Assembly: GCA_002269645.1 (NCBI GenBank) | Contig: NIVC01000440.1 | Coordinates: 186,001 to 250,000 of the forward strand | Origin: Macrostomum lignano | Lineage: Eukaryota | Length of the DNA stretch: 64,000 bases | Reading direction: 5' to 3' | Shown here: piece after piece, positions 58,566 to 64,000 of the stretch | How positions within the stretch are numbered: the first letter of the stretch is position 1 | How the letters are laid out: each line of letters starts with the position of its first letter | Translations under genes and position numbers: made by a program | Notes under the pieces: generated by a model | The model's input: the letters and a program-made list of their open reading frames with translations, nothing else | What the model was told of the DNA's origin: nothing | The model's database searches: none

Positions 58566-58876
58566 CATACATGCACAACCTCTAAAATTCGGTCGGCCAT
58601 GCGACTTTGTTTTAACAAAAATGCGACGTAGTTTTTAGCCAAAATGCGACGTAGTTTTTGGCCAAAAATGCGACTTACATGTAAAAAACCCTAACGCAAA
58701 ATTAACTTTGGGTAAACGGCAGGAGTAACTATGACTGTCTTATTAAGTCAAAATGCCTCGTCAGCTACTTAGTACTACTTCGGTATTTTTTGGGTGGGCA
58801 TTTTTGCGACTTCCTTGGTTGGCCGCCAAATCGGTCGGCCGGATCGGCCGACTCGGCCGACTGTTGGGCATGTATG
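58566..58876. mobile_element. MITE copy A (CATACATGCACAAC..GTTGGGCATGTATG, 8-bp TSD CCTTCAGG) carrying a 28S rDNA fragment at 58710-58773
   Basis: TIRs match 13/14; TSD at 58558-58565 and 58877-58884; subterminal AAAATGCGAC repeats. Confidence 0.85.
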
Positions 58877-58896
58877 CCTTCAGGTTGGGGTTCAGG

Positions 58897-59061
58897 CATA
58901 CATGTGCAACCTTGGGAATCACCCAGCCATTTCTATTGGCAAAACACACATGTAAGTCACTATTGGTTCAGGTTAAGAAAGGGTAAACTCTAATAGCATT
59001 TTACATGTATGTGTTGCACATAGAAATGGCCAGGTGAATCCCTAGGTTGCAGCCAAGCATG
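58897..59061. mobile_element. Short related MITE/hairpin element with ~50-bp internal inverted repeats
   Basis: Starts CATACATGTGCAACC, ends GGTTGCAGCCAAGCATG; flanks GGTTCAGG/GGTTAAGG (7/8); 50-bp arms match 42/50. Confidence 0.65.
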
Positions 59062-59077
59062 GGTTAAGGTTAGGGTT

Positions 59078-62000
59078 AAATAAATAATCCGCCGCCGGCG
59101 AACCAACCTGTTAACCTGCACATTATTCAGATCAACCTGCACCACGCCCTTGCAGCATCTAGCAACCTTTCAGGCACCTTTGCCAACAAGGAAGTTGACA
59201 TCTACCTTATTCAGGAACCGTATACCCGCAAGGGGAAGCCGACCTGCCTGCCGCCAGGCTATCAGGTTCTGTACCTCTGCGCGAACGACACCCCCAGAGC
59301 TATCGCCCTCGTCAAAAACGACCTCCCGGCCACTATTATGCCAATGTTTTGCTCTAAAGACATGTGTACTTTCTCAGTCTTTGACTTGACCTTCGTTTCC
59401 GCTTACCTGGACATTCAGGAGGACGTCCCTCCCCCCTCCTGCAGGAGCTGGCGGACTTCTGTAATCTCCAGGATCGGAAGCTTATCGTTAGCTGCGATGC
59501 TAACGCCCACAACACTGCCTGGTCTAGTAGCGATACTAACAGGCGCGGTGACTTACTAATTGATTTCATTAACTCCTCCTCGTTACACATTTGCAACAGA
59601 GGCAGCAAACCCACATTTATTGTCTCTAATCGGCGTGAGGTTATCGACCTCACTCTCGTCTCCAACAACGCCCTCAATCAGGTCCACAGCTGGCTGGTTA
59701 GGGATGACCTCCCATCGCTTTCCGACCACTCGTACATTCAGTACAGCATCAGCTCCGTCGGAGCCCGTCATGAGAACCGGGACCGCCTTAATTTAAAAAA
59801 GGCCGACTGGACAGGTTTTCGAAGAGACCTGCTAAAACTCCTGACCGAAGCCAACTTACCGGACTCCAGCGAGGATCTCCCTGGCATTGAGCATCGGTGC
59901 AACTCCCTCGTTGAGATCCTAAACACCGCCATACGCGCTAACGCCCCTAAGCTGTTTTGCAGGAAGAAATACTCTCCTTGGTGGAGTCAAGAGCTCACTC
60001 GCATGAAGAAAAACACCCGCCGACTGCAACGCCTCGCAAACGGCTCGAATACCCCAGAGGATTGGGAGAACTACCACTCTGCTCTGAGGATGTACAAAAG
60101 TGCTATCCGAAGGGCTAAGAAGACCACCTGGAAAGCCTACTGCGCCGGCCTGGAAGGGCAACACCCCACAGCCCGGCTGGTCAGGACTCTCAGGCACGAC
60201 ACGCTAGCTCAGTGTAACTCCCTTCTGCACCTGGATGGTAACTACACTACCAGTGCCGAAGGTTCGCTAAATCTTCTTTTCTCCACCTGCTTTCCGCAGG
60301 TTGACGAACCGGAGTACGTGGTCGATGACCACAGGCCTTGTGATCACAAGCTTTTCCAGCAGTGCGCCACCCCCCAGCTACTCCAGCTGGCAGCAAATTC
60401 TTTTAAACCGTATAAATCGTCTGGCCCTGACAATATCGCCCCCTGTATCCTGCAGGAGGCGCTAAAGCTGCAAAACTTTGCTGATTCTTTCTCTAAATTG
60501 CTTGTTGACTGTTATACCACAGGTTACATTCCCACAATCTGGAGAATGTCCAGAGTCGTGTTCATCCCGAAACCTGCTAAGGGTGACTACACCAACGTGA
60601 AATCCTTCCGGCCCATCAGCCTCACTTCCTTTTGTGTTAAGCTGATGGAGAGGCTCATCCTGTGGAGGCTTCGAGAGTGCGACCTGCGCTCCGACCCTGT
60701 CAGTAAGTACCAGTACGCCTTCCAGCCTGGGAGGACGACTGAGCATGCTCTCCACGCCATTACCTCCAAAATTGAGAGTGCCATCCTTAGCAAACAACTC
60801 GCTTGCGGGTTGTTCGTTGACTTCGAAGGAGCATTTGACAATGTCCTCTTCCGCTCCTTCAGAAATTCTCTTTCCCGCAGGAATGTAAGACACAGCATTG
60901 TTCGCTGGATTTATTTTATGATCCGCAAAAGGTTTGTGACATCCACACTTATGGGCGTTACCCTCACCCGGGCGGTGATGAAAGGCGGCCCGCAAGGTGG
61001 CGTGCTAACTCCACTTCTCTGGAATCTCGTCATGGACGAACTTCTAACCGCTGACATTCCCAGCAGTATCACCAGGGCGGGCTACGCCGATGACGTTGCC
61101 GCGGTCGTCAGCGGACCCGACCCCGCCACTCTGCGCAACCTGATGCAGCAATTCGCTGACAAGGCGGCCGACTGGGCTACACAGCATGGCCTAAAAATCA
61201 GCGTCACTAAGACTGTCGCTGTTGTTTTCACCAAGCGCCGTAAGTGGGAGATGAAAAACCTCACTGTCTATGGCAGAAACATCCCCTTCAAGAAGGAGGT
61301 CAAATACCTCGGTGTGACGCTAACGCATGACCTGCGCTGGACGAAGCACCTTGATAACGTCATCGGTCGGGCAAAACGCTGCTTTGCCCAGCTGCGCAGA
61401 GCCATCGGGCCGACTTGGGGCCTCTCGCCTAGAACGGTCCGTTGGATTTATACCGGCATCATCCGGCCCAGTATCACATACGCGAGTCTCATCTGGACTA
61501 GCGTGCTGGAGCAGAAGGCCGCCCGTCAGCGGCTGTACCAGCTTCAGGGCAGCATTTGCCGTGCCATCACAGGTGCGTACCCGTCCACCCCTTACGAGGG
61601 GCTGAACACTATCCTTAACCTACCTCCGCTTCACCTATTTATTAGGGCGGAGGCTATGAAGTCTGCCTCCCGGCTTATCAGAGATAAAACGTTAAATAAC
61701 GCGCCCTCTGGCTTTATGCCAATGAAAACATTAATCCCGCATATGGACTTTGTCCGCCGCGACCTTAACAACATCCACATGGACCTGGGCAATGTGGATA
61801 GTCGACCTCCCGCCCTCAACATCAGGAGGGGCTTCAAGACCGCCATCCCTGGCCGAGACAACATTCCGCTGGATGTCGGTGTGAACCGGCGCAGCCAGGG
61901 CATTCACTGCTTCACCGACGGCTCGCTGTTCAACGGCCGCGCTGGAGCGGGTATTGCCATTTTCCACGAGGGTAAGATGCTTCTCCAGGAAAGTCTGCAC

Positions 62001-62893
62001 CTTGGTGAGAACACCTCAGTTTTCCAAGCTGAAATTTGCGCCATTGAGCAGTGTGCCCAGCAACTGTTTCAGGCGAACATTAATAATTTTGACATTAATT
62101 TCTACACTGATAGCCAAGCTGCTATTAAGGCCTTAACCACTGAGAATATCTCCGCTGCTACAGTATCTCAATGCCACCGCAGTGTGCAATCTCTCTCAGT
62201 CCTTAACAGGATTAGAATTATCTGGACACCTGGTCACAGCAACATCCTGGGCAACGAGCTCGCGGACTCTCTCGCCAAGGAGGGCAGCAACCCAGACGGC
62301 AACCACCGTCTGATGAGGCTACCCACTCCCAGGTCGCAAGTCACCCGCCATATCAACAGGTGGCTCCATCAGCAGCACCAGCTCCACTGGAACAGCTGCA
62401 CCGAGTACAGGCAGAGCCGCTCTGCCATGCCTAACCTGAACAGGAAAGTCTCTGATTATCTGATTTCGCTTAACAGAACCGACCTCAGGGAGATGTGCAT
62501 GGTCCTAACCGGCCACGGATTCTTCCAGAGACATATATTGTTGCAAACCGGTTGCCCTCCCACCTGTCCCTTCTGTGGCATAGGAGAGGAGACCGCGGAG
62601 CATCACGTCACCTTCTGCCCTTACTTCAACAAGGCGCGGCACAAATACCTCGGCCACCCCCAGCGGATGGACGAGCTGACCACCGCGGACAATATCCGAG
62701 ACCTCCGCGCCTTCGTCCGGGACTCCGGCCGGATGAGGGTCGCCGATGCCTCCACTGCGGACCTGCCGACTACTGGCGGGGACTGGGCGCACCCCCAAGG
62801 CTAATCCTTGTGCTCTTTTACCTTGGGGTTGCGATAGGGGCCTCGCGGCCTATTCGCGGCGCCTGCGCCCCCCGTCAGTAGTAGTAGTAGTAG
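59078..62893 (+). mobile_element. Non-LTR retrotransposon (I-group, LOA/R1-like: APE-RT-RNase H-CCHC), 5'-truncated, (GTA)n tail, 13-bp TSD TAAGGTTAGGGTT
   Basis: APE motifs QINLHH, IQEPY, SCDANAH..W, IDLTL, SDH; RT motifs [24 protein letters not shown]; RNase H FTDGS/EICAI/TDSQ/DSLAK; CPFC..EETAEHH..C; TSD at 59065-59077 and 62894-62906. Confidence 0.95.
59080..62804 (+). CDS. LINE ORF2 polyprotein; one frameshift in the C6 run at 59431-59436; no start codon or ORF1 seen
   Basis: First frame runs from ~59080 to 59436; second frame is open from 59439 through 60003 to the stop at 62804. Confidence 0.85.
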
Positions 62894-62970
62894 TAAGGTT
62901 AGGGTTGGGGTTAGAGGGTTCAGGTCAAGATTGGTAGTCAATTTATAGCATGTTGATATTTGTTATTAAT

Positions 62971-63231
62971 CATACATGCGCAACCCCCCTGATTTACACT
63001 GGCCATGCGATTTACTTTTTGACCAAAAATGCGACTTACCTGTCAAAAAACCCAAAATTTTGGGTAAACGACAGGAGTAACTATAACTGTCTTATAAGGG
63101 CTAAATGCCTCGTCATCTAACTAGTGCTACGTCTGTATTCTTTGGGGTGGGCATTTTTGCGACTTACCCCTGGTCCACCAAAATTTACAGTGGCCAGATC
63201 GGCCAGGTCGGCCAGCAGTTGCGCATGCATG
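62971..63231. mobile_element. MITE copy B (CATACATGCGCAAC..GTTGCGCATGCATG, 8-bp TSD TTATTAAT) carrying a 28S rDNA fragment at 63062-63125
   Basis: TIRs match 13/14; TSD at 62963-62970 and 63232-63239; same internal layout as copy A. Confidence 0.88.
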
Positions 63232-64000
63232 TTATTAATAGTAAAATGCCTACTAAGTTTTTGTGTTATAGTTTATATAAAATATTAAACAACTTATACT
63301 TAAACTCAAAAAACAAAATTTGCTATAGTTAAGGACTTTAATGAGGGTCCCATGATTAGCCAATGCCCATATGTATATAGAAGGCAAATTTCAATAAAAA
63401 CAAAAAAGTTAATATATAGTCATATAGACTAGGTTTTTTGGAAATGATTAGGCCCTAGCTTTGTAATGCAATTATATAAATAAAATGAAATTTGAAATTA
63501 GAAATACAAAAAAATAAAGAAAGTTAGGCTAATTTGTCATAAGAAAAACTTTAAAAATATTTATTTAGCTTTCTGCCTTTCTTTAAAATGATAATAAATA
63601 AGGGTTAGACAAGATCTTGATCTTGGTTATCAAGATCTTAGAACTTTAATAAATGGCTATTAAAAAAACTTATCTTTACAAAAATAGATGCTTTCGATTA
63701 TTTTATTAAGCCTATGCTGCCTATTTTTAAAATTAAGAAATGGTAATTTCCAGCATTAAAAGCCAACAATTGTTAGGCCCTAGGCCTATTGTGACTGTTT
63801 ACAGTGATTATATAAATAGTAAGACAGTTGTTTTAATAGTCAATATATAAAACAAATCTATATACAGTATACTAATTTTGTGCTGTTTGTCAGTCAGTCA
63901 GCCAGTCAGTTGGTCTGTCATTGATTTTTTTAGAACTATCTCTCTGGTCTGGCCAATTTTTTTTTAAATCAGCTTTTAAAAAATTGTATTTTTTAATTTT

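Follow-up and report, generated by a model that had tools for sequence, protein, structure and literature searches.

Two copies of a miniature transposon in Macrostomum lignano carry a 28S rRNA-derived segment around the R2 insertion site

The stretch of Macrostomum lignano DNA analyzed here (the window) comprises 64,000 nucleotides of contig NIVC01000440.1. Near its right end lie two MITEs (miniature inverted-repeat transposable elements), M1 and M2, each with an internal 64-bp segment (the module) that resembles the part of the 28S ribosomal RNA (rRNA) gene in which R2 retrotransposons insert. An earlier note on this DNA described two insertions under the interval 58566-63239. The interval holds four separate insertions rather than one feature, in the order M1, a third MITE (M3), a retrotransposon without long terminal repeats (long interspersed nuclear element, LINE) and M2. 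M1 (58566..58876, + strand) is 311 bp long and M2 (62971..63231, + strand) 261 bp. Both are supported by inverted ends, closed reading frames and their alignment to each other.

M1 is flanked by the 8-mer CCTTCAGG at 58558..58565 and 58877..58884, and M2 by the 8-mer TTATTAAT at 62963..62970 and 63232..63239. Both target site duplications (TSDs) are perfect (8/8 bp) and their sequence differs between the two sites. The M1 duplication is a variant, with CC, of the hexamer repeated there, and this variant is found at those two positions only. The 14-bp ends read CATACATGC[A/G]CAAC plus the inverse and are complementary at 13/14 positions in M1 and likewise in M2. The window contains 6 sites that fit this end pattern, where 1.2 would be expected, every one of them at MITE ends or within M3. 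A second motif, AAAATGCGAC, occurs 4 times in the window against 0.02 expected, always within M1 or M2. The coordinates, ends and duplications of both insertions are thus exactly those given in the earlier note.

M1 and M2 align over 240 bp with 78% identity (E 4e-48). M1 contains a subterminal 23-bp tandem repeat at 58599..58674 (+ strand; unit ATGCGACGTAGTTTTTAGCCAAA, 3.3 copies by Tandem Repeats Finder) that includes the AAAATGCGAC motif and is presumed to be a transposase-binding array. The 23-bp unit is single in M2, while M1 has two more, and the subterminal repeats of both elements contain TGCGAC. Stops occur in all six frames, leaving both elements without coding capacity. Six-frame peptides of the MITEs had zero matches among 5.8 billion proteins, and a 57-amino acid open frame had zero matches among 1.84 billion protein representatives. 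MITE-specific patterns also had zero matches in metagenome, viral and prokaryote-genome collections, and look-ups of the exact products of the neighbouring LINE reading frame and of its M. lignano UniRef relative were equally empty; none of these collections holds the host genome. M1 and M2 are two diverged members of one non-autonomous, cut-and-paste MITE family; this and all later statements about the family rest on two copies, about 4 kb apart, in one window. The terminal inverted repeats, fixed-length TSDs, small size and lack of coding potential support the proposal that a family of non-autonomous DNA transposons is present, here in two or more diverged copies.

The module lies at 58710..58773 in M1 and at 63062..63125 in M2, on the + strand in each. 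The 28S 64-mer quoted in the earlier note has the same sequence as the Rfam LSU_rRNA_eukarya consensus (large subunit, LSU) at model positions ~2244-2307. Each module matches it at 53/64 positions without gaps, the number that the earlier note had counted by hand, and at 85% when two 2-base gaps are allowed. When the Rfam LSU consensus was compared with the whole window by BLASTN, the two best matches were M2 63062-63126 (E 1.7e-15) and M1 58710-58773 (E 5.9e-15), and the third-ranked match had an E value of only 2.7. Local alignment scores of the modules were 76 and 78, compared with maxima of 23 among 417 other tiles of the window and 27 among 2000 shuffles. Scanning short stretches with cmscan also returned LSU_rRNA_eukarya for M1 (22.2 bits, E 6.5e-4) and M2 (29.1 bits, E 1e-5). 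Both scores are under the Rfam gathering score of 50, as those of fragments would be; ~64-110 of the 3401 model positions are covered. Whole-window Rfam scans lose the modules to speed filters, and scans of 111-261 nt were needed to recover them. No rRNA gene was found in the Rfam scan of the window. The module is a fragment of LSU rRNA and not an rRNA gene.

The left edge of the module is sharp and is the same in both copies, where TT is followed directly by GGGTAAACG. Homology to rRNA upstream of GGGTAAACGG was considered and rejected, as the cmscan extension has low posterior probability and BLASTN ends at the boundary. The right edge lies at +28 relative to the R2 nick, with a possible, weak continuation of ~12 nt in M2, perhaps to +40. 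The span of -36 to +28 around the R2 site proposed for the captured piece is therefore borne out. The related claim that rRNA similarity is absent on either side of the segment stands for the left side and is weakened for the right side of M2 by this possible continuation. A perfect palindrome of 16 bp, ACCCAAAATTTTGGGT (within 63036-63075), lies immediately to the left of the module in M2, and CCTGTC pairs with GACAGG of the module. At the corresponding place M1 has AACCCTAA (58687-58701), an octamer resembling the telomere repeat.

A three-way comparison of M1, M2 and 28S was used to reconstruct the history of the module. All three sequences are alike at 52 columns. Relative to 28S, M1 and M2 have in common the substitutions G-25A and C-9G, together with two bases added after CTTA and two lost near TAG, a +2/-2 change at the core. 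Private changes number 3 in M1 and 4 in M2, and one further column differs in all three. Orientation and central position of the module are likewise common to both elements. The shared boundary, orientation, position, substitutions and indel indicate one acquisition before the M1 and M2 lineages split. A near-exact copy of 28S was acquired once and then changed independently in each lineage. The scrambled core (CTTA-TA-AG, CTTA-T-TAAG) was also considered as the footprint of an excision or of nuclease repair, a reading that two copies cannot support.

We then asked whether the modules resemble functional targets of enzymes that cut 28S ribosomal DNA (rDNA). The R2 protein contacts DNA from about -40 to +20 (PMC11204384) or from -38 to +21 (PMC10499050). 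The earlier note had remarked that the segment is similar in extent to the DNA bound by R2 protein, and -36 to +28 does agree with these ranges. Mutagenesis of R2Bm has shown that the upstream motif A-31WWWGCNNNA-22 is required, with G-27 essential, and that the cleavage-site motif T-6TNANN/T+1 (the slash marking the cut) is also required, their distance tolerating +1 only (PMC10499050). In M1 the upstream motif is AACGGCAGGA, in which the A, the GC and the second A are all kept. In M2 it is AACGACAGGA, in which G-27 is changed to A. At the native cleavage-site position M1 has TTATTAA and M2 has TTATAAG, and TTNANNT occurs nowhere in either module. The 15-bp semi-palindrome recognized by the homing endonuclease I-PpoI, CTCTCTTAAGGTAGC, is matched at 8/15 positions in M1 and 9/15 in M2, and its central TTAA has 2 extra bases in both. 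Neither M1 nor M2 has an insertion at the module core.

Because the core rearrangement is common to both copies, their common ancestor was already not a cleavable target. Judged by the R2Bm rules, the only R2 target rules so far measured, M1 and M2 would not be cleavable sites for R2-type enzymes, nor would they be for I-PpoI-type enzymes. The proposal that the copies serve as working rDNA-target mimics or landing pads fails on these grounds: the shared indel breaks the cleavage motif of R2 as well as the middle of the I-PpoI site, and in M2 G-27 is missing too.

M3 (58897..59061, + strand) is a hairpin-like MITE of 165 bp that begins twenty bases after M1. It was recognized by an exact match to the end pattern and has the tip CATACATGTGCAAC and no 28S module. 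Nearly all of it consists of 60-nt inverted arms that are 80% complementary. Its right tip is altered to GCCAAGCATG; the flanking duplication, GGTTCAGG / GGTTAAGG, is not perfect. The likeness of M3 to M1 and M2 is confined to the terminal CATACATGTGCAAC, and BLAST found no similarity between M3 and the interior of either element. Since M3 bears the tips of M1 and M2 without the module, these ends can exist without 28S sequence. In Rfam, M3 gave weak sub-threshold matches to microRNA precursors, which are usual for long hairpins.

The ends and duplications were also compared with those of known superfamilies. A TSD of 8 bp is known for hAT, P and a few other superfamilies. We take the hAT consensus to be YARNG termini with an nTnnnnAn duplication. 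The CATAC termini of M1 and M2 do not fit YARNG, and nTnnnnAn is found in TTATTAAT and in neither CCTTCAGG nor GGTTCAGG (1/3 duplications). The P consensus is presumably a 7-8-bp TSD with CANRG termini, to which CATAC conforms at 4/5 positions, as does CATGA of the Drosophila P element (4/5). On termini and TSDs alone, P is slightly favoured over hAT as the putative superfamily. The suggestion of hAT or P thus holds as far as TSD length is concerned, with CATAC departing from the hAT termini and lying nearer to those of P.

Three of the four insertions, M1, M3 and the LINE, struck a short interstitial hexamer array that resembles telomere repeats (TTAGGG / TTGGGG / TTCAGG) and now occupies 58416-58557, 58877-58896, 59062-59078 and 62887-62925. 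M2 lies 46 bp past the array. Removing M1 and M3, each with one duplication, restores the hexamer phase of the array. The LINE, at approximately 59078-62886 (+ strand), is a 5'-truncated element with a (GTA)6 tail, inserted in the hexamer array. It encodes an AP-endonuclease domain (with one frameshift near 59440), reverse transcriptase, RNase H and a C-terminal CCHC motif, and UniRef proteins of M. lignano match its open reading frame (ORF) with 99-100% identity, which places the window in this flatworm. A relative with 55% identity, located on a JGI contig, has a (GAT)n end beside (GTGA)n, which hints at a LINE clade that targets simple repeats.

The window is not a telomere. It holds a Cox11-like ORF (5372-6136, + strand), a cadherin ORF (19285-21393, - strand) and a TRAF-type zinc-finger ORF (57388-58245, - strand). 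Positions 1-58000 have an extreme density of minisatellites with genes in between. In all, 45 distinct tandem arrays with periods of 4-76 bp, many of them strongly strand-skewed, make up 46% of the window.

How did a piece of 28S come to lie in the middle of a MITE? The module is probably a captured fragment of 28S rDNA or rRNA that an active MITE lineage has carried along as a passenger. Before M1 and M2 split, an ancestor of the family, which is marked by an 8-bp TSD, CATACATGCRCAAC ends and TGCGAC subterminal repeats, gained ~64 bp (possibly up to ~76 bp) of 28S rDNA or rRNA at its centre, once. The most likely route would be filler or template-switch DNA introduced while an element with an internal deletion was being repaired; among templates in the cell, rDNA and rRNA are the most plentiful. 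The piece would then have been carried as a passenger, dispensable for transposition because the same tips occur in M3 in the absence of the module. Of the origins suggested in the earlier note, the relic of a capture event is the one favoured by the shared boundary, substitutions and indel and by the loss of the cleavage core. The mechanism of capture and the lack of a function for the module are what we infer from this evidence.

Several observations weigh against a mere passenger. The module and the 40 bp to its right, which include GGGTGGGCATTTTTGCGACTT, form the longest well-conserved internal block of the elements, ~110 bp with 80-90% identity. Both TSDs are perfect, for which the chance is ~1.5% if all of the 12.6% per-lineage divergence were post-insertional. 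Intact TSDs despite this divergence indicate that much of it dates from a time when the lineages still transposed. Retention of the module throughout active divergence would also fit a function, although it is equally expected of a neutral passenger in a master copy. Only two copies are available for comparison. Furthermore, a random 64-bp piece of rDNA would be centred on the R2 site with a coincidence of ~1-2%. Ascertainment bias weakens this last point, as a reader of the sequence would recognize only this famous, invariant stretch of rDNA.

The same observations bear on whether the module serves the MITE itself, as a site for transposase or a host factor or as a structured or transcribed segment, and was selected in master copies. 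It lies within the best-conserved internal block, was kept in two lineages that diverged while active according to the TSD argument, and is 86% identical between M1 and M2 (55/64) compared with 75% elsewhere (145/194). This difference is not significant (Fisher p=0.08). The shared changes do not maintain the stem pairs of helix 69 (H69), M3 has the same termini and no module, and no transposase is known to bind the module sequence. Taken together, these results make a service to the MITE itself unlikely.

The fragment might instead have arisen by aberrant transposition, in which two parent copies situated ~64 bp apart in 28S used their outer ends and the product later underwent internal deletion. 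Such an event would account for a short, sharply bounded piece of gene body placed exactly in the middle of the element, and rDNA is a multi-copy target that is tolerant of insertions. Conversely, no remnants of internal ends or of an 8-bp TSD lie beside the module. Two copies cannot separate this route from filler capture, and we consider it rather improbable.

Mimicry of the rDNA target of R2 or of a His-Cys box homing endonuclease, with the module acting as a landing pad or a titrating decoy, is suggested by the match in extent to the DNA contacted by R2Bm and by the upstream recognition motif A-31..GC..A-22 kept in M1. The flanks of the module are well kept and the centre alone is scrambled, and DNA transposons that encode I-PpoI-like nucleases do exist (KolobokP). 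Yet the cleavage motif is missing in both copies and had gone by the time of their common ancestor, M2 lacks the G-27 that is essential in R2Bm, and the core is free of insertions in both. A literature search found no report of R2 in M. lignano, and some flatworm R2 families are without target specificity (PMC5035012). Target mimicry is therefore very doubtful. The same small weight is given to the broader possibility that an interaction with a flatworm site-specific rDNA enzyme has kept the module, either through M1-type decoys or through subfamilies with an intact core that would serve as landing or homing sites outside the rDNA. For M1-type copies a pure binding decoy is conceivable, the upstream motif being intact.

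Chance similarity or an assembly artefact, for which the shortness of the match is the sole argument, is practically dismissed by E values of ~1e-15 in each of two diverged copies, by null maxima far below the observed scores and by the independent choice of the eukaryotic LSU family by Rfam.

Capture of rDNA by mobile elements has precedents. A 2024 review tabulates transposon modules derived from rDNA, namely Pokey/mPok (intergenic spacer, IGS), short interspersed nuclear elements (SINEs) with a 5S promoter, SINE28 (28S), Cassandra and Ajax (PMC10946416). No cut-and-paste MITE with a module from the 28S gene body is listed in that table, and a literature search found neither a Macrostomum MITE nor a catalogue entry. 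Although absent from the review table, a MITE with such a module is the same kind of event as the known captures.

Pokey/mPok, a piggyBac family of Daphnia, is the nearest precedent among DNA transposons, as it likewise combines a DNA transposon and MITEs that carry rDNA-derived sequence (PMC3849761; PMC10946416). Pokey carries repeats from the IGS and from ITS2 (internal transcribed spacer 2) rather than the 28S gene body, has a TTAA TSD and inserts in 28S, whereas M1 and M2 have 8-bp TSDs and both lie outside the rDNA. Membership of Pokey/mPok is ruled out by the duplications CCTTCAGG and TTATTAAT, which are not TTAA. Mammalian SINE28 is also a non-autonomous mobile element with a 28S-derived piece (PMC10946416). 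As a retroposon it differs from M1 and M2, which are of the cut-and-paste kind, with inverted ends and TSDs of fixed length. SINE3/AmnSINE1, Cassandra and Ajax similarly spread rRNA-gene modules, from 5S, by means of non-autonomous elements (PMC10946416). Their 5S modules act as pol III promoters and plainly serve the element, a role that is not evident for the fragment of 28S helices H69-H71.

Fish R2 families also carry a 28S-like piece that comes from near the target, in their 3' untranslated region (PMC5035012). In that case R2 itself bears the piece, which is associated with a shift of the insertion site (PMC5035012), while M1 and M2 are DNA transposons unrelated to R2. Kolobok transposons of the KolobokP group encode an I-PpoI-like nuclease, and short units bearing their ends can move alone. 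KolobokP has a TTAA TSD and RR..YY termini, is unreported from flatworms, and no 28S-like site has been described in it. TSD and termini exclude M1 and M2 from KolobokP, none of whose defining features they share. The filler of P and hAT deletion derivatives, and Pack-MULEs, consist of host fragments that were copied into the middle of an element during gap repair and then amplified. The fragments captured in those elements usually come from unique genes, whereas here the source is multi-copy rDNA that spans a famous insertion hot spot.

If the module is constrained or is used by R2 or a nuclease, M1 and M2 would exemplify a novel kind of interplay between mobile elements of two classes. With such use, a DNA transposon would redistribute the target of another mobile element, which would bear on the off-target behaviour of R2-based insertion tools. 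If the module is only a passenger, the family adds one clean cut-and-paste MITE example to the transposon modules derived from rDNA. The copies also call for caution in searches for rDNA fragments and R2 off-target sites in flatworms, in which they would show as dispersed '28S hits'.

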